A DNA stretch of 64,000 nucleotides. It comes from Macrostomum hystrix (Eukaryota > Animalia > Platyhelminthes). The position numbers and the translations under genes are program-made. This document shows positions 48,764 through 60,690 of this stretch, one piece after another (the first letter of the stretch is position 1; every line of letters begins with the position of its first letter). The DNA lies in contig CATNEN010000024.1 of NCBI GenBank assembly GCA_950097015.1, positions 930,001 to 994,000 of the forward strand, given 5' to 3'. The notes under the pieces were generated by a model, which saw nothing but the letters and a program-made list of their open reading frames with translations, did no database searches and had not been told where the DNA came from.

Positions 48764-51700
48764 TCATAGTTGCTTAGCAACTTCAGCCAGCAGGCGAGTG
48801 GGGCTGCTGTCCCTTAGCAACAGCTGCTGCTGCTGCTGCTGCTGCTGTTGCTGATGGTGCGGCTGACAATCGGTCGGGTCCAGTGAAGGCGCCGTGACAG
48901 CCGGGGCGCAGACTACAGTTCGGCCCAGGTAGGGAAATTTGTTGCAATCACTCAGACAGGGGTCATTGTTGGATACGAAGCTGGACTTGCTGGCCATTGG
49001 TGGTCGCTGAGCGATTGGCTGCAGACTGTGAGAGTGGGGAAATACTCGTGTACTTATTTAAAGAAAAATCGAGTGACCGTAGTCCAGTGGTTAGATCTTG
49101 GTAATTGTGGCAGAGAGGTGGGGAGTTCGAGTCTCAGTCTATTGCTTCAGTTCACCCCGCTGTGCAACGGGTACCAGCATTAGCTGGGATGGGAATTCGA
49201 GTAGGTGCCATAGCCCCCAGTCCACGGACTGAACATCTGTACGCAGCCTTTGAATACGCCGCTCAATAGCTGCTGCTGTGCCACTGGCTGTTGACTTGGC
49301 CCAACTGACCGGTTGACGCGCTGTGCCCCCCCGCACCAAGATCCCTGACTTCGAGTCCATGGTGACATTCATCACATTAATTTGGGGCGCAGCGGTAGAT
49401 AGAAGGCTTGGGGGTTTGCTAGGGGGTCAGTGGAAGAGCGGTTAACGCGTTTGCCTCTGTCACCTTGGTCCCTGAGCTCGATTCCGCGGCGAGGCCACAT
49501 TCATTTGGGGCGCAGCCGCGGAGAAAAGGCTTGAGGGCTTGTCGTGCAATTTACGCCCTTAAAAGCCAATCCCCAAGGCTCAGTGAGAGTGTACACTGCC
49601 TGACAATCAAAAGGTCCAGGCAGATGTACACCTCTGTGTGCATTGCCTGTGAACGGTTCATGAGCGCGTGTTCTTAGCAGTCAGCGGATTGGGCAGGAGT
49701 GCCCCAAAATAACTGATAAAAATAATTATTACACCTGCCCCTCTAAGTTTAGATGTGCAGTTTACTGCACAACCGCAGCTATTGTGCGGCGCATCTGAAG
49801 GTTGCGTACGGCTGTTCAGTCCATGGACTGGGGGCGGACACCACAGCCACCCTAAATTACCCCTAATTTAAGTTGGTACCCATGCACTTTACAGCTTGGT
49901 GAACTGAAGCAGAGTTAAGTGTCTTGCGAAACGGCACAGATAGTTTAATTGGAGTCAAGAATCGAACACCCAACCTTCAAGTCGTGAGTTCGAAGCTCTA
50001 ACCACTATAGGCCACAACTCTAGTTGTAGCTAAAGCTTACACCCACAAGGCTACGGGCCTAAAGGCATGTCACTAAGTTATGCGCCAAGGACTACTAAAA
50101 TAATGTATATATTTAATTTAGTAACTACTTTAGTAGTCCTTGTGATGCGCTGGTGTCCACAGTCCTCCTGCCAAAATATGCTCAACGTCTCGAGGCCACA
50201 ATTTAGTCGCTAAATTTACAGAACGGCCGGAGCCGTGAAGGACTTAAGTTTCCATGGTCTACGTGACCTTCTTAGCGGCCTTCTCTAGTATAGCGGCAGC
50301 AGCACAACAGCTCACCGATCTATGGGCCGCAGCAGCTGCTGCTGTTTCTTCTGCTGCTCAGTTGAAGAGGCGCCCAGCTGCTGCGAGACGAGACCGGGCG
50401 GTTTTAGCGCCACTTCAAAGAGCTTCCGCTGCAGGATCTCGCTGGGGTCCAAATTCAACACTGTGCGCGTCGGCGGCTTCAAAGGGCCGCCAGCACAGCG
50501 GCTCTTGAACGGGGAGCTGCCGGACAGGCCTACATCGGTGGATGGGGCGGCGGCCATGATGAAATTCAAATCCCAAGTCCAATGCTCACATCCTAAATCC
50601 AATTGATTCTTTCAACTCACCGGAGGTGCTCAAACCGAGCTCAGACACGTCGTCGACGCTGCGGTGTAGCGCCAGCCGGGGCAACAGCGTGGCGGGACTG
50701 TAGCTGGCTTCGTCCGGCTCCTGCCACATCGACTTCGGCAGGTGGCGGCTGCGCATTGGCACACTGGTGGCCACCGGGGCCACCGACGGTAGCGGCTGGT
50801 GCTGCAGCAGTGCGCGCTTCTCCTTCAGCCGACCGCCTGATTTGGAAAGAATGTTAGACAGTTATTATGATGGCGAAGGAGAGGATAGGTAGCTCAACAA
50901 TGGGAGCTGGCGAAAAGTCCTAGAAGAGAGGATAACGATATGTATAATAGAGAGGAAGAAATAGCAGCATTCCATTTGCCGAGATTGTAACATCATGGGA
51001 GAATTGGAAGGAGCATCATGGGAGGAGGGGTATGAAAATCCTGGGAGATTAGGTACGAATATCCTGGGAGATTAGGTAGGAACATCTTGGGAGATTAGGT
51101 AGGAACATCTTGGGAGATTAGGTAGGAACATCTTGGGAGATTAGGTAGGAACATCTTGGGAGATTAGGTAGGAGCATCATGGGAGGAGGGGTATGAAAAT
51201 CCTGGGAGATTAGGTACGAATATCCTGGGAGATTAGGTAGGAACATCTTGGGAGATTAGGTAGGAACATCTTGGGAGATTAGGTAGGAACATCTTGGGAG
51301 ATTAGGTACGAATATCCTGGGAGATTAGGTAGGAACATCCTGAGAGATTAGGTAGGAACATCTTGGGAGATTAGGTAGGAACATCCTGGGAGATTAGGTA
51401 GGAACATCTTGGGAGATTAGGTAGGAACATCTTGGGAGATTAGGTAGGAACATCTTGGGAGATTAGGTAGGAACATCTTGGGAGATTAGGTAGGAACATC
51501 TTGGGAGATTAGGTAGGAACATCCTGGGAGATTAGGTAGGAACATCCTGGGAGATTAGGTAGGAACATCCTGGGAGATTAGGTAGGAACATCTTGGGAGA
51601 TTAGGTAGGAACATCTTGGGAGATTAGGTAGGAACATCTTGGGAGATTAGGTAGGAACATCCTGAGAGATTAGGTAGGAACATCTTGGGAGATTAGGTAG

Positions 51701-52422
51701 GAACATCTTGGGAGATTAGGTAGGAACATCCTGAGAGATTAGGTAGGAACATCTTGGGAGATTAGGTAGGAACATCTTGGGAGATTAGGTAGGAACATCC
51801 TGAGAGATTAGGTAGGAACATCTTGGGAGATTAGGTAGGAACATCTTGGGAGATTAGGTAGGAACATCCTGGGAGATTAGGTAGGAACATCCTGGGAGAT
51901 TAGGTAGGAACATCCTGGGAGATTAGGTAGGAACATCTTGGGAGATTAGGTAGGAACATCTTGGGAGATTAGGTAGGAACATCCTGAGAGATTAGGTAGG
52001 AACATCTTGGGAGATTAGGTAGGAACATCCTGGGAGATTAGGTAGGATCATCCTGGGAGGAGGATGACCTTACCTGGCCGCTGTTGCTGGCCTCCAGCAT
52101 TTGAGATGGGGTGCGCATGCGCATGGTCCAAAAAGCCCGGCGCCCGCCGGTACACCTGGCAGGTGGAGGAGGCGCAGCTGCTGGTATCCTCGGTGCTGTC
52201 GTCATCGGAGGAGCTGGTCCGAAGCGGTTGATTTGCCCGGCGTCGACGGCCGGAGGAGCCGCCAGACGACGAGTCTGTGGAAGCCGACGAAATGCATGGC
52301 GTGCCCAGACCGGAGTCTGGCTCTAGCTGCTGCTGCTGTTGCTGCTCTGGCAGTGGGGCGACCCTCGTACCAATCGGCACCAGAGTGCTCTTTCGACCGC
52401 CACCGAATGGCCTGCTAGCCAT
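48764..52422 (-). CDS. Disordered 346-aa protein with FAM181/YAP-like TEAD-binding omega-loop motif, 4 coding exons
   Basis: join(complement 52422-52074, 50836-50621, 50529-50316, 49025-48764) = 1041 nt; donors GTAAGG, GTGAGT, GTGAGC; phases 1,1,2 are consistent. Contains VPMRSRHLPKSMWQEP and poly-Q tracts. Confidence 0.78.
49078..49330 (+). mobile_element. Diverged SINE (family A-related)
   Basis: GTAGTCCAGTGGTTAG A-box, GAGTTCGAGTCTC, ATTGCTTCAGTTCACCCCGCTGTGCAACGGGTACC, CAGTCCACGGACTGAAC. Confidence 0.65.
49422..49705 (+). mobile_element. SINE family B
   Basis: GGGGGTCAGTGGAAGAGCGGTTAACGCG...GAGCTCGATTCCGCGGCGAGGCCACATTCATTTGGGGCGCAGCCGCGG. Confidence 0.8.
49725..50020 (-). mobile_element. 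SINE family A
   Basis: ACACCTGCCCC...GGCGCATCTGAAGG...CAGTCCATGGACTGGGGG...GTGTCTTGC...GAATCGAAC...AACCACTATAGGCCACAAC. Confidence 0.8.
50995..52055. repeat. Intronic minisatellite, 23-bp unit (GGGAGATTAGGTAGGAACATCTT), ~45 copies
   Basis: Period 23; abuts the donor at 52073. Confidence 0.93.
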
Positions 52423-54387
52423 TTCTGACACTCAGTGCTGAGCCGCTGATGCCTATGGACTCCGGGCGCTGGCTGAGCTGCTCTGCGCTGAAACAGATTC
52501 GGAGAAATATGGAAGTGCTTTCGACAATTCAATTTCAATTCAATTTCGACAATATATTTTAGAATGAGCTGAAATATCAATCAGCGAATATTTGGAGATA
52601 GATATGACAGAACCAGTCACTGATCTAAGCATTTTTTATCGTGAAAATAAAAAAGTCAATAAAATCGCATTCCATTATTAAAATAATAGCTAAGGTATAA
52701 ATAAGATATGATAGAAACTGAAATTATGATTTTCTGTGATTATTATAGTATTTATAACATATTTAAGCTATGTCATAAAAATAGCTGCCATATATTGTAT
52801 ATAAATATAATTTTTAGATAGATAAGTAGTTATAAGACCATTCTATACTATGCCTGAACTATTATAGCTGCCATAAATATTGTTGCTGTGTATATTCCTT
52901 ATTGACAAATTTATAGCGACTGTATGATTGCAATGATACATATCCTTTTATCCTTAATATGTGGTCAAATGTTTATAACCCCAGCAGCAAAAATTAGACA
53001 CTTAATTTCCTCAGACTTTTCTGAAGTTGCCAAAACATGTGTGTGTTTTCGAGAACTTTGTATAATTTTATTTTAACAGTATAAGTATGTACAGAATTTA
53101 TCACATTTTCGATATGAGAATTATATTTCTTCATTTTTTATACGGTGCAGATGTGAATTTTTCACAAAGATCTAAATGTCAATCCTTATCGATTCATACT
53201 TGGATTGAATATATCAAAATTAAGTTATATCTTAAAAGAATGTGGTATCTGGATAACACTGTCGTAAATATGCTTTTTTTTAATACCCTTCAATTTATAG
53301 CGATCGACTGTATTTTTTAAGATATTTATTTAACCTCCATAGATCCAAATTGTTTTTCTTTAGAACTTTGTAATCAAATTTGTTATAACATTTTGTTTGA
53401 AAATTTACCGGAGTTGGTATACCAAGTGCTTAAATCGAAGTTACTTCTAAAAACCTTCGCTGGTAAGAACGAAATGTCACTTGAGTTATCGGTGTCCTTA
53501 CTCATAAACAATTAAAAAGTCCAATTCATAACAATTACAGGCTTCCTTAATTATTTTTCCCGAATAAGGCGCAAGAAACTTTTATAATCTCAATAATTAC
53601 TTAATCATAATAACCACAGTTGTCACGAAAAGCGTAGATTTCACGACACTTTTTAATTTAACTTCATTATTATCAATGAAATTTTATTGAAAATACTGTG
53701 CAATGTACTTTGTAAATATTGTGATGCATTTTTATTCTGATCCCAATATACATAAAATCGCGATTTGTGTAAAATCTTTCTGAATTCTAAAATTCTAAGA
53801 AGTATATTTATGCAGATTTTTTTCCAAAAATTAATCAGGTAGAATTATCGTTGTCACATTTTCCTACAAATGGACGAATGGAATAAGGTGTGTTTGAGAT
53901 AAAGTAGATTCATGCGTTCATAAAAAGAAATAAATGTATTTATAGTATTCCTTCAGATTCAGCCCTTCAAAGGCTTTTAATTACTTTTACCTTTTTCAGA
54001 CTATCACTTACTTTCGGGATGTAAAATTCTTGCTTTTTACTGTAGCTACGATATAAACCTTTTAATTATCCCTTTTTAATCCCTCGAGGTCGCAGAAACA
54101 ATAGCCCGTCAGTTAAGTAAAAATGTTTCACACGCGCATTCAGCCATAATTAATTTACAACTAATAATTTGATAGTTACTAACTCCAACAGACAAACTTA
54201 AAGAGCATCTGACCGCTTCATCATATTCTTCTTTCCTGAAATGCATTCTAGCCTGTAAGTACATGAAGCCGCTTAGACTATACGCTATTTAGCAGTCTCT
54301 CGATCATTACCGACGTTTTTATCATATCAGCTCTAGGACTACTCTCAAGATCACTAATTTATAGATTCTAATGTACATTCCTGATTT

Positions 54388-54985
54388 GAGAAAGCTGTTG
54401 CATGTCTGCTTTGAGAAACCTGTTGCATGTCTGCTTTGAGAAACCTGTTGCATTCCTGCTTTGAGAAACCTGTTGCATTCCTGCTTTGAGAAACCTGTTG
54501 CATTCCTGCTTTGAGAAACCTGTTGCATGCCTGCTTTGAGAAACCTGTTGCATTCCTGCTTTGAGAAACCTGTTGCATTCCTGCTTTGAGAAACCTGTTG
54601 CATTCCTGCTTTGAGAAACCTGTTGCATTCCTGCTTTGAGAAACCTGTCGCATTCCTGCTTTGAGAAACCTGTTGCATTCCTGCTTTGAGAAACCTGCTG
54701 CATTCCTGCTTTGAGAAACCTGTTGCATTCCTGCTTTGAGAAACCTGTTGCATTCCTGCTTTGAGAAACCTGTTGCATTCCTGCTTTGAGAAACCTGTTG
54801 CAAGCCTGCTTTGGGAAACCTGTTGCATTCCTGCTTTGAGAAACCTGTTGCATTCCTGCTTTGAGAAACCTGTTGCATTCCTGCTTTGAGAAACCTGTTG
54901 CATTCCTGCTTTGAGAAACCTGTTGCATTCCTGCTTTGAGAAACCTGTTTGCATTCCTGCTTTGAGAAACCTGTTTGCATGCCGT
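54388..54985. repeat. Minisatellite, 25-bp unit (CTGCTTTGAGAAACCTGTTGCATTC), ~24 copies
   Basis: Period 25; source of three spurious minus-strand ORFs. Confidence 0.93.
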
Positions 54986-55915
54986 TTTGAGGATCCTGTT
55001 GCATTCCAAATATGGCGACCTGATGAATTTTAACTGCTTGCAGCCTGCTCATGTATCATGTGAAATATTCTGATCATGTTTGCATTTCTTTACCTTTAAA
55101 ACTAATTTTAGATTGTAACTGAAAGTGTTACAAATTTCCAATTGGTTTTTCGACGTTTTCTTGTCCAATAACGAGGCTGATATTTTGGCCGTATTTCAGC
55201 CGTTGTTGAAGCAGAATTCATGATGCAATTACTGCTGCGACCCCCAATAACTGGATAGTGGCGCATGTTAAAAATGGCTTCAAGGGGTGCTCAATGATGT
55301 TTCCAAGGAGAGCAGTAAGCGCATTGGGGATACCAGTGATGCTCTAAATTACAAGCTGAAGCCTTCTGGTCTTAATTCAATAGGCCCGGCTAGCGGGACA
55401 ATTTCCACAGATCGGATTATCAGAGAGGATATCCGAGAGGATATAAATGCATGCTTAGTCCCTTAGTACCGTCACAGTGGCCAGATTGGAAACGATCCGG
55501 GAGCTCGCCGAAGGCTAGATTCGTGAAAGAAACCCGGCGGTAAGTGAAAAATCCGTTTTGAGAGAATTTGAGAGTCATTGGGACAGGTGGCAAGCCAATA
55601 GGAGCAGTAGTGCTAAGCCCATGTAAACTCGCATAAATTGTCTCCACTAAAATTTAAGTCACACCTTCCTCTACTCCTGATAAAATAGATATAGATAACT
55701 GACCGACGTCGTCAATACGGCTATTCATTCACACTTATTCGCAGATTCCAAGCTTGAGACTGTGACGGTTCGCCTGAGAGGATTCACTGAGAACGTGAGA
55801 GCAAAAGGAATTTTTTGCATGACAATCTCCGTCTCAGGCATTGTAATTAAATACTTTTATTTTCCTCTTCTCAGGTCGCTCCAAGCCTTCCGCAAAGCAA
55901 TTGTCAAGTGAAGCA

Positions 55916-56656
55916 ATGCAGGGCTCAACTCTGTTGCGGGCCGGCCTTTGCCTGCTCTTAGGGGCAGCACTCATCTCGGCCTCGGCGCAGGCAGCAACTT
56001 CCAGCGGCAGGGCCAGCGGAAATAGCCAGACCGCTGTGCAGGCTGGCGGACGGCAGCGACACGAGGCAGAGGTGACCGAGACGACTGCATCGAAGACAAT
56101 TGCGGGTTCAGCAGAGAGTGATCTAGTACAGCACGAGGATCTGTTTGATGATGAAGTGGAACAGCTGGATGACACCATGCAAGAAAATGACAAGCGATCT
56201 CCGTTCTGGAAGCGAGCTCCGTTCTGGAAGCGAGCTCCGTTCTGGAAGCGAGCTCCGTTCTGGAAGCGAGCTCCGTTCTGGAAGCGAGCTCCGTTCTGGA
56301 AGCGAGCTCCGTTCTGGAAGCGAGCTCCGTTCTGGAAGCGAGCTCCGTTCTGGAAGCGAGCCCCGTTCTGGAAGCGAGCTCCGTTCTGGAAGCGAGCCCC
56401 GTTCTGGAAGAGGTCTCCGTTCTGGAAGCGTGCTCCGTTCTGGAAGCGTGCTCCGTTCTGGAAGCGAGCCCCGTTCTGGAAGCGAGCTCCGTTCTGGAAG
56501 CGAGCCCCGTTCTGGAAGCGAGCTCCGTTCTGGAAGCGAGCTCCGTTCTGGAAGCGAGCTCCGTTCTGGAAGCGTGCTCCGTTCTGGAAGCGTGCTCCGT
56601 TCTGGAAGCGAGCCCCGTTCTGGAAGCGTGAACTCATCGAATCCGATATGTATTGA
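55916..56656 (+). CDS. Neuropeptide precursor (246 aa): signal peptide, acidic spacer, 22x APFW + 2x SPFW, each flanked by KR
   Basis: Acceptor TTTCCTCTTCTCAG ending 55874; ATG 55916; signal MQGSTLLRAGLCLLLGAALISASAQA; 24 x 18-nt units 56198-56629 with synonymous third-position variation (CGA/CGT/AGG, GCT/GCC); AATAAA at 56678. Candidate upstream donor CG|GTAAGT at 55540. Confidence 0.9.
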   Translation: MQGSTLLRAGLCLLLGAALISASAQAATSSGRASGNSQTAVQAGGRQRHEAEVTETTASKTIAGSAESDLVQHEDLFDDEVEQLDDTMQENDKRSPFWKRAPFWKRAPFWKRAPFWKRAPFWKRAPFWKRAPFWKRAPFWKRAPFWKRAPFWKRAPFWKRAPFWKRSPFWKRAPFWKRAPFWKRAPFWKRAPFWKRAPFWKRAPFWKRAPFWKRAPFWKRAPFWKRAPFWKRAPFWKRELIESDMY

Positions 56657-57161
56657 AGACAGACTGAAGTGAAAAGCAATAAACAATTTGCTGCGTGAGA
56701 AATCTACGAAGTATAACTGTTGGCGAACTCATAATAAAAGACAGGAAATTTTGGCTTTCCTAAATAAATAAACCAGCTCTAAGAAACGCGGTTTTTTTCT
56801 CCAGAAAGTCGACAGATTAGAATACTCATAAATACTTATTTGTTCAAACATTTTTAATTCAAACACAGTGCTTGATATGTCTACCTAAATTTGACAGAAG
56901 CAATTCACTGCAAATCATTGCACTGGACGCGTAAGGTTTAATGTGTTTTATGCAAGGTTTTAGAAAAACACTCAAAGAGCTTTTCAACTGCGATAGTCTC
57001 TTACTTCAGTCATAAAAGTGTGCTAAAAGACGATTAAATAATATAACTGTTTCCTGTATGTCACATGAAACTGCGCTTCGGTATAAAAACTCGGATGCTC
57101 AGTTTCACGCCAATGTCAACTAAAATTCCACAACTTCAGCAAAGTCGGCAGTACGCGATAT

Positions 57162-57403
57162 TGATGTGTTGGAAGGCAGGGAGAAAGACGAGCAGTTGTA
57201 TTCGTATGAATAATTCGTAGGCAGGTGTGACCTTGTCGTCAACCTTGCTCGTGCTTCTCATTCGTTTGCTTCGTTATATTTTTCCATAGGCCGCTGGCTT
57301 GCGGGCTCTCTTTACTACAGTAATGTGTTAGGAGGTTTTACCCCTAGACACTTCGCACGAGCACAACAAAAAGTAATCGCAGTTAGTATGTAAGTCCACA
57401 TCA
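57162..57403 (-). mobile_element. 3' LTR (242 bp) of a Ty3/Gypsy element
   Basis: Inverted termini TGATGT (57162) and ACATCA (57398-57403); polypurine tract GAGGAGGGGGGAAG on the minus strand at 57418-57405, immediately upstream. Confidence 0.82.
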
Positions 57404-58432
57404 ACTTCCCCCCTCCTCAAAAATGGATGCTCTCTACTCGTTAGTTCGTTGTTTACATTTCCTCGATAAGTCTCTTGGGTGGCACTCCTTTGTTTCCCCT
57501 GCCGGACCGACGGAACTTCTGATGTTGCTGATGCGCTCTTTTGGACTGGAGCTCAGCTGTTACCATCTCTGGTTTTCTGAACGGTAATAGGTTGCGTGAC
57601 GTCCAAATTTTACCATTGTCCAGCCGGTATGTGAAGTTGCCAACGATTTTGGTAACTCTGAATAGCGAGGTGAAAGGCGATTTGCCCTTGGGCACATGGG
57701 GAAGACGGACACGTATACCAGGTTGCCGTCTCTAAAATGCCGCTTGAAAACCCGGTGTTGTTCTTGTCTTGATGTGGAGCAGTTAATCTTGTCTTTTTCC
57801 GACTCGTCCGCCTGTGTTGTGGCTTTTCGGGGCTGAAAGTTTGCTCTGATATTCCGGCCAAAGATTAGTTTGGCGGGTGAGTCCCCATTTTCATTTGGTG
57901 TTGTTCGGAAGCTGCAGATTGTCTGTTGCATGCCGTCTTCAAAACTTTTCCGGTCAGTTTCGAATGTTTGGGCTGCATGTTTCAACGTACGATTGAACAC
58001 TTCCACTTTCCCATTTTGTCTGGGTTCGTAAAGTGGTACTCTTTCGTGCCGTAAATCGCGGGAATAGAGAAATTCCTCCATCTCTTTAGATACGAAGCTG
58101 CTCCCGTTGTCAGATACTAAGGTGCCTGGGTTGCCGAATCTGTTGAAAACTTCAGTCAGCCATTTAATTAGTCTTGGTGACCTCGTATCTCCCGTAAGGA
58201 GTATCTCTGGGTATGACGAATAGTAATCAATCAGTGCTATAACGAATCGTTGGTTTTGGGGAGCAGTCGCGAATGGGCCAGTGATGTCGATGGCGAGCTT
58301 CGACCAAGGTCTGTCAGGCTTCCTGATCGGTCCTCCATCAGGCACAATAATCTTGTGTGATTTTGCGCTGTCCTGACATGGTAGACAGAATTTGACATAG
58401 TTCGTTATGGCGGTCAAAGAACAGGCCTTTCT
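57162..58432 (-). mobile_element. 5'-truncated Ty3/Gypsy LTR retrotransposon (integrase + PPT + 3' LTR)
   Basis: YVKFCLPCQ, PDRPWSKLAIDITGPF, LIDYYSSYPE, LVSDNGSSF, NGKVEVFNRTLK (D,D35E), FRTTP...SPAKLIFGR. The C-terminal tail is frameshifted into ORF 57695-57453. gag, protease, RT and 5' LTR are absent. Confidence 0.9.
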
Positions 58433-59068
58433 GAAAGAGATCTCCGTTCTGGAAGAGATTTCCGTTATGGAAGCGTGCTCCGTTCTGGAAGCGTGCTCCG
58501 TTCTGGAAGCGTGCTCCGTTCTGGAAGCGTGCTCCGTTCTGGAAGCGTGCTCCGTTCTGGAAGCGTGCTCCGTTCTGGAAGCGTGCTCCGTTCTGGAAGC
58601 GTGCTCCGTTCTGGAAGCGTGCTCCGTTCTGGAAGCGAGCTCCGTTCTGGAAGCGTGCTCCGTTCTGGAAGCGTGCTCCGTTCTGGAAGCGTGCTCCGTT
58701 CTGGAAGCGTGCTCCGTTCTGGAAGCGTGCTCGGTTCTGGAAGCGTGCTCCGTTCTAGAAGCGAGCTCCGTTCTGGAAGAGATCTCCGTTCTGGAAGCGT
58801 GCTCCGTTTTGGAAGCGTGCTCCGTTCTGGAAGCGTGCTCCGTTCTGGAAGCGTGCTCCGTTCTGGAAGCGTGCTCCGTTCTGGAAGCGTGCTCCGTTCT
58901 GGAAGCGTGCTCGGTTCTGGAAGCGTGCTCCGTTCTAGAAGCGAGCTCCGTTCTGGAAGAGATCTCCGTTCTGGAAGCGAGCCCTGTTCTGGAAGCGTGC
59001 TCCGTTTCGGAAGACTGCTCTGTTTTAGGGACGTTCAAATCGCAGCTGCCGGTATATGAAAGTATCAT
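57560..59068 (-). CDS. Chimeric 502-aa ORF: antisense neuropeptide repeat (TEHASR)n fused in frame to Gypsy integrase core
   Basis: True ATG at 59068, no stop to 57560. Whether it is expressed is unknown. Confidence 0.4.
   Translation of the reverse strand: MILSYTGSCDLNVPKTEQSSETEHASRTGLASRTEISSRTELASRTEHASRTEHASRTEHASRTEHASRTEHASRTEHASRTEHASKTEHASRTEISSRTELASRTEHASRTEHASRTEHASRTEHASRTEHASRTEHASRTELASRTEHASRTEHASRTEHASRTEHASRTEHASRTEHASRTEHASRTEHASRTEHASITEISSRTEISFRKACSLTAITNYVKFCLPCQDSAKSHKIIVPDGGPIRKPDRPWSKLAIDITGPFATAPQNQRFVIALIDYYSSYPEILLTGDTRSPRLIKWLTEVFNRFGNPGTLVSDNGSSFVSKEMEEFLYSRDLRHERVPLYEPRQNGKVEVFNRTLKHAAQTFETDRKSFEDGMQQTICSFRTTPNENGDSPAKLIFGRNIRANFQPRKATTQADESEKDKINCSTSRQEQHRVFKRHFRDGNLVYVSVFPMCPRANRLSPRYSELPKSLATSHTGWTMVKFGRHATYYRSENQRW
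58432..59028 (+). pseudogene. Second (A/S)PFW-KR array, ~33 units, lacking signal peptide and with stops in the peptide frame
   Basis: Same 18-nt unit GCTCCGTTCTGGAAGCGT; TGA 58432, TAG 58756, TAG 58936, TAG 59026; 180-bp block duplication (58741 line = 58921 line). Confidence 0.75.
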
Positions 59069-60322: not shown

Positions 60323-60690
60323 AAACGAGGTAAAACGCTGAGGCGCGTACGCCGAGGCGTTTCACCTCGTTTCAGCCCGAGCAGCCTATCAATATTGGTG
60401 TATTGTATAGTTAGCGGGCGTGAAACGCGTTTCACGGCCCGCCCGCTGTGCATATCTATGGAATTCGACCATAGACAACAGCAGAGGACGGGCTGCCGTT
60501 TGTTTCAACCTCGTTTCAACATGCGTATAGGCTAACTACAACACCAATATGCATAGGCTTCTCGGGCTGAAACGAGGTGAAACGCCTCGGCGCTTATACG
60601 CGCCTCAACGTTTTACCTCGTTTCAGCCCTCTCTGCAGCCTATCAATATTGGTATATTTTAACACGCGTAGGCTAACTACAACCAATATA
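60323..60690. mobile_element. Foldback/MITE-like nested inverted repeat
   Basis: AAACGAGGTAAAACGCTGAGGCGCGTA..CGCCGAGGCGTTTCACCTCGTTTCAGCCCGAG...TTGGTGT is inverted at ~60530-60623; a further partial direct copy runs to ~60690. Confidence 0.7.

Follow-up and report, generated by a model that had tools for sequence, protein, structure and literature searches.

Remnants of Ty3/Gypsy (Metaviridae) elements that have lost their 5' part are familiar in animal genomes, and the fragment analyzed here likewise retains the 3' part of pol in native order, a polypurine tract (PPT) and a complete TG...CA LTR. It likewise carries frameshifts and is accompanied elsewhere in the genome by a decayed full-length copy and by solo LTRs. 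Unlike the usual remnants of this type, its truncation abuts a stop-free tandem repeat, by which the open frame is stretched to 502 codons.

A second group of relatives is formed by the domesticated Gypsy integrases of vertebrates, GIN1 and GIN2, in which the ancestral HHCC zinc finger was kept and is conserved across species (PMC3424704). The present locus resembles these genes in being a single-copy, integrase-derived frame without the rest of the element and with a recognisable DDE triad; unlike them, its finger is lost, its alleles differ by frameshifts and no orthologue was found, a repeat-integrase fusion being absent among public proteins of 276-878 aa. Though its junction is single-copy, the fragment is a remnant and not a detached gene, because the PPT and the complete 3' LTR are still attached to it. 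The third and closest comparison is with the long spurious open reading frames (ORFs) that arise in stop-free tandem repeats. The phenomenon here is the same, extended by an in-phase transposon fragment, and no substantive difference could be discerned; an ordinary retrotransposon remnant beside a pseudo-array gives a chance ORF.

The stretch of DNA under study (hereafter, the window) comprises 64,000 nucleotides of the flatworm Macrostomum hystrix (GenBank assembly GCA_950097015.1, contig CATNEN010000024.1, positions 930,001 to 994,000 of the forward strand). A prior sequence-only reading had described in it a minus-strand frame joining an antisense neuropeptide-type repeat to an integrase, and had proposed either that a gene is arising here or that a deletion happened to fall luckily. 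From the analysis presented below, the 502-aa ORF is very probably a chance open frame over a retrotransposon remnant beside a pseudo-array and not a gene.

Results and discussion

Organization of the locus and of the 502-aa frame

The features of the locus, in window coordinates, are as follows.

55916..56656, plus strand: intact APFW precursor gene (gene 1) with signal peptide, its array 1 at 56192-56630
57162..57403, minus strand: complete 3' LTR, 242 bp, TG...CA
57405..57418, minus strand: polypurine tract directly upstream of the 3' LTR, read directly
57453..57695, minus strand: separate 80-aa ORF in the native frame, with what is left of the integrase C-terminal domain and, after it, the end of pol
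57712..57714, minus strand: site at which the assembly allele is frameshifted, differing in length by 2 nt from the copy on contig C39 and from the allele of sequencing run X2
57716..58411, minus strand: integrase segment in native frame, with the CLPC half of the zinc finger and the DDE core (Pfam rve)
58411..58412: junction where the retrotransposon remnant meets array 2, placed 8 codons before the finger's first Cys
58412..59028, plus strand: array 2, a paralogous array of the APFW type, built from 18-nt units that are degenerate at its edges

The frame that had been described as running from the ATG at 59068 through the repeat into the integrase is indeed present in the ORF list (57560..59068, minus strand, 502 aa), and an in-frame TGA stands directly before its ATG. 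The repeat amounts to 32 units and the degenerate unit KACSLT, after which the sequence reads AITNYVKFCLPC, and the ORF is composed of five parts, given here in the order of translation.

After ATG 59068, minus strand: 21 residues of unique flank
Minus strand: 32 TEHASR-type units of six residues each
One degenerate unit, KACSLT
Minus strand: AITNYVKFCLPCQ and the integrase core
Last ~47 residues: tail out of the native integrase frame

Splitting of the ORF into units revealed His in 24 of the 32 repeats, as TEHASR, TEHASK or TEHASI, while the other units are of the kinds TELASR, TEISSR, TEISFR and TGLASR.

The integrase remnant and its Ty3/Gypsy family

What remains of the Ty3/Gypsy element is its last 1.25 kb, that is, most of the integrase, the end of pol, the PPT and the 3' LTR, the integrase remnant beginning 8 codons before the first Cys of the finger. 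When the 220-Mb genome was searched in six frames, this integrase had a single close relative, which lies on contig C39; the many other Gypsy pol genes are ~30-36% identical. The C39 copy (C39:785643-790516) spans ~4.9 kb and has two LTRs; it contains several stops, and its integrase is interrupted by an insertion of 289 bp. It matches window positions 57159-58411 at 88-93% DNA identity, the homology ending exactly at 58411. Past the equivalent of 58411 the native finger (AH-KG-H, 29 residues, C-LP-C) follows in the C39 copy, and the absence of the native His pair from the fusion, as put forward in the sequence-only reading, is confirmed by this break in the homology to the parental element. 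The LTR has 8 matches in the genome. The family is small and nearly extinct, with a handful of LTRs and one other internal copy, itself degenerate.

The catalytic core of the window copy is kept: the rve domain (PF00665) is detected in the ORF by Pfam with an E value of 2.4e-11, above the curated cut-off, and D, D and E are all present in the alignment with relatives. The closest public protein is a Macrostomum lignano transposon fragment, with 71% identity. When changes in the integrase core were assigned by residue-level polarisation, 4 were private to the window copy, and 20, in addition to 2 stops, were private to the C39 copy; from its few private changes we read the window copy as the younger or less mutated of the two.

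Some observations on the surrounding transposon landscape are worth recording in their own right. Most private changes of the C39 copy are G>A/C>T changes (R>Q, E>K, D>N, T>M, P>S), a pattern that looks like deamination-type hypermutation. The LTR pair of that copy is 94.6% identical, while its 5' LTR is 99.6% identical to the window LTR apart from a 15-nt gap, suggesting recombination or conversion between Gypsy copies. A short element of ~79 bp, MITE-like and palindromic, lies at window positions 60323-60400 and 60542-60653 and has dozens of genome matches on both strands; the 1.3 kb that separates it from array 2 is found nowhere else in the genome.

The APFW gene and the two arrays

Array 2, read on the plus strand, is an APFW/KR array without a signal-peptide region. 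The four stops that had been noticed in its peptide frame over 58412-59068 were recovered, the last of them falling just outside the array, and array 2 is an already dead pseudo-array. With regard to the TAG changes, these had been described as silent in the antisense frame, and this holds (TCC>TCT, both Ser); the two TAGs, however, amount to a single mutational event, since they fall within a higher-order duplication of 180 nt, in its two copies (34-52 and 94-112 in the ORF).

The identity between arrays 1 and 2 is 91-93%. No flank homology outside the arrays, of the kind that would be a sign of tandem duplication of the whole gene, was found between them, and each array has been homogenised around its own unit variant (CGA versus CGT). 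Since the homology to gene 1 is confined to the array and the two arrays are homogenised around different unit variants, array 2 may best be regarded as an older paralogue that has lost its 5' part. A genome search for further APFW arrays returned none beyond these two, the other matches being unrelated dibasic repeat genes at 17-50% identity, and a literature search on the APFW neuropeptide retrieved no paper.

Long arrays of short, dibasic-spaced peptide repeats were encountered elsewhere in the genome (C38:8110979-8115124, C24:2281839-2283773, C12:1943200-1945011 and C1:1629133-1646920), with 30-50% protein identity to the APFW precursor and open frames of up to 1400 aa, and they suggest a genome with a large repertoire of repeat-peptide genes. 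As a separate observation, contigs of run X6, which is labelled as a different organism (B), match the 3' end and 3' UTR of the APFW gene (56576-56745) with 2 differences in 149 nt; either the neuropeptide gene is nearly unchanged in a close relative or the X6 sample is mislabelled.

Openness of the repeat by chance

The length of the frame has to be judged against the behavior of the repeat itself. The consensus 18-nt unit contains a stop in none of its six frames, array 1 is free of stops in all six, and array 2 is open in three of the six (two without any stop over 58412-59068 and a third whose single stop lies outside the array). In the ORF frame, a stop would result from only two of the 54 single substitutions that are possible in a unit. 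Tandem Repeats Finder (TRF) reported 0% indels in array 2, so that the phase is kept automatically along its length. With a unit that is stop-free in six frames and an array without indels, whichever antisense frame happens to be in phase with the integrase is likely to stay open. Comparable frames are seen at the same locus: array 1 has two antisense ORFs, 281 and 187 aa long, and array 2 an off-frame plus-strand ORF of 258 aa.

The spacing of the metal-binding residues follows the same logic. Given the frame, the chance of a His at exactly -30 from the Cys is about 1 in 6, and that one stands as far from the Cys pair as in the native finger is a phase coincidence of the six-residue period. 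Neither the length of the ORF, nor the silent TAGs, nor the spacing of the motif goes beyond chance.

Two more tandem arrays were observed in the window, at 54376-55007 (25-nt period, 25 copies) and at 50989-52059 (23-nt period, 47 copies). Their periods are not multiples of three, and the 25-nt array still gives antisense ORFs of 232 and 213 aa, which are another case of chance ORFs in the repeats of this genome.

Spacing and structure of the presumed zinc finger

In the sequence-only reading, the HHCC spacing of the zinc finger had been described as reconstituted by the repeat. Counting of residues yields H192-x5-H198-x29-C228-x2-C231, and the spacing is as had been claimed. The general formula invoked for such integrases, H-x4-6-H-x29-C-x2-C, needs correction for this family, in which the native finger is H-x2-H-x29-C-x2-C; in public relatives it lies inside a conserved block, AHEGHPGIVRMKRxLRxxYWWPGMD. 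None of that block is present in the fusion, where 8 native residues before the first Cys survive.

Domain searches and structure prediction were in accord on this point. Pfam found no match to Integrase_H2C2 (PF17921) in the ORF, nor in the 97-residue pseudo-finger segment at E<=1, whereas the relative used as control (P0002) matched the same domain at 3.3e-18. In the AlphaFold2 model of the ORF, built with an 8-sequence alignment, the repeat, the junction and the CLPC region had pLDDT values of 37-45 and the core was folded at 71-86, while in P0002, at equal alignment depth, the native N-terminal domain reached 77-85 with the expected helices. The rebuilt finger is hence arithmetic of spacing without a domain behind it. 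A Pfam match to a Plasmodium histidine-rich protein (E 2.7e-4, far below the cut-off) was set aside as a low-complexity artefact.

The junction in the genome and in sequencing reads

The junction occurs once in the 220-Mb genome, and no further copies of the fusion were detected. Contigs assembled from short reads were compared with the window over 56570-58510. Run X1, with 197 Mb of contigs and an even depth of ~59-68, is probably a DNA run; one of its contigs (110 nt, 58382-58491) crosses 58411 and is identical to the window, and another departs from the window at 58411 into C39-type sequence, showing the parental copy separately. Run X2, from the same study as the best DNA run and from a different sample, contains a contig of 1136 nt (57358-58493, depth 38.9) that bridges the junction with 82 nt on the repeat side. 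Two independent read sets thus cross 58411/58412, and the misassembly that had been named in the sequence-only reading as a possible refutation is not the source of the junction.

Transcription and the antisense question

The contigs of run X2 carry loose ends, which we take to be a Nextera end and, in reverse complement, the SMART template-switch oligo plus GGG. On account of these ends X2 is probably cDNA, and its contig total (42 Mb) and uneven depth also fit. It covers the remnant and the junction with roughly one seventh of the read depth seen over the 3' UTR of gene 1, and the region is therefore probably transcribed in at least some samples.

The direction of such transcription bears on a proposal made along with the fusion, namely that minus-strand RNA running through array 2 could silence the neuropeptide gene by way of dsRNA, siRNA or piRNA. 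As a non-coding regulator of this kind, one may think of a transcript from an upstream promoter or of LTR read-out from 57285 into the gene-1 3' flank, which would be antisense to gene 1 as well. The 91-93% identity of the arrays speaks for it, as ~92% complementarity to the APFW mRNA would be expected. One X2 contig joins the reverse complement of the template-switch oligo to 57285 and marks the 5' end of a minus-strand RNA in copies of this LTR, in which 57285 is likely the transcription start; the LTR is multi-copy, and so the start is not assignable to the window locus. X2 contigs also run continuously from the LTR into the 3' flank of gene 1 (56755-57213). These contigs are unstranded, however, and are compatible both with plus-strand read-through from gene 1 and with minus-strand transcription driven by the LTR or from upstream, and the read-through explains the falling depth equally well. 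In the probable RNA runs X5 and X6, moreover, the gene-1 3' UTR is covered to ~56745, an end that fits the AATAAA signals of gene 1 at ~56689 and ~56733, and there is no coverage of 56765-57154 and nothing of 57415-58454. We accordingly consider an antisense regulator unlikely. That the region is present in cDNA is probably due to transcription that reads through from the highly expressed gene 1 or is driven by the LTR, and not to an mRNA of its own. Independently of this question, other sequences were seen joined at 57285 in X1, X2 and X5.

Alleles and constraint on the fused frame

A strain-specific proto-gene would be very young, neither fixed nor refined, and from its minus-strand mRNA a protein joining a His-rich repeat to an integrase core would be made. 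The presence of the region in the probable cDNA run X2, the preserved DDE core and a frame unbroken in both the assembly and the matching DNA run X1 are what such a gene would display. The alleles tell against it. In the assembly allele, relatives align downstream of 57712-57714 with the frame of the ORF at 57453..57695 and not with that of the 502-aa ORF, in which the alignment of the tail is weak and unconvincing; the final ~47 residues of the ORF are thus read in a non-native frame, and the C-terminal domain has been lost.

The allele present in X2 is itself frameshifted. Compared with the window it has, inside the ORF, ten substitutions and four length differences (+2 nt at 58200, -3 at 58058, -2 at 57714 and +4 at 57656), of which all but the one of 3 nt shift the frame. 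The allele was modelled by applying the listed differences of one short-read contig to the window, the array part being taken from the window, and in this model translation of the fused frame from 59068 ends after 300 residues (near 58170), short of the second catalytic Asp. Stops or frameshifts in other alleles had been named beforehand as the observation that would speak against a new gene, and the X2 allele carries them. As each of the two alleles seen bears its own frameshift, the locus evolves without constraint on the fused frame. Against this it should be stated that the integrase core of the window is well kept, with its DDE intact, and that the 502-aa frame is unbroken in the assembly strain.

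Taking these alleles together with a zinc-finger domain that lacks Pfam and AlphaFold2 support, a search of public proteins that returned no fusion orthologue and a repeat in which long open frames are the default, we hold the proto-gene to be very improbable. Of the two readings offered from the sequence, the lucky deletion is supported, while the new gene in the making is not, given the frameshifted alleles, the missing finger and the want of an orthologous fusion. An assembly artefact, in which a collapse or mis-join in the repeat made the junction, is the least credible of all, since, error-prone as tandem arrays are in assembly, the 110-nt X1 and 1136-nt X2 contigs cross the junction and TRF found no indels.

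Probable history of the locus

A chance frame over a retrotransposon remnant can be accounted for by a short series of events. In the simplest history, a Ty3/Gypsy element would have come to lie in minus orientation ~500 bp downstream of the APFW gene by inserting antisense, next to or into the array 2 paralogue. A deletion or rearrangement may then have removed everything from the 5' LTR through the middle of the integrase zinc-finger domain, and the remaining 1.25 kb would have been left abutting the degenerate 5' edge of the dead array 2. An ATG 65 nt beyond the array completes the 502-codon frame.

An origin of the junction by a switch of the reverse transcriptase onto APFW mRNA as template was also considered and is rejected, because the array is antisense to the RNA strand of the element and because cDNA without a 5' LTR would not normally be integrated. 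Microhomology at the breakpoint amounts to a 4-nt GGCC at slightly different offsets and is unconvincing.

Implications

Overall, the locus conveys a caution for annotation. Where repeat-peptide units without stops abound, in-phase transposon fragments yield very long ORFs and motif-like spacings by chance, and such ORFs should not receive gene annotation. It is improbable, though worth stating for what it would entail, that in the assembly strain a minus-strand RNA, arising upstream of 59068 or through LTR activity and ~92% complementary to the APFW mRNA over ~440 nt, dampens the gene by dsRNA or small-RNA pathways or is translated into a His-rich integrase-core protein. Were this true, a transposon remnant would have given rise to a regulatory or coding novelty that is strain-specific and still segregating, and, if the antisense transcript held, the locus would exemplify how such a remnant makes a strain-specific regulator of a neuropeptide.
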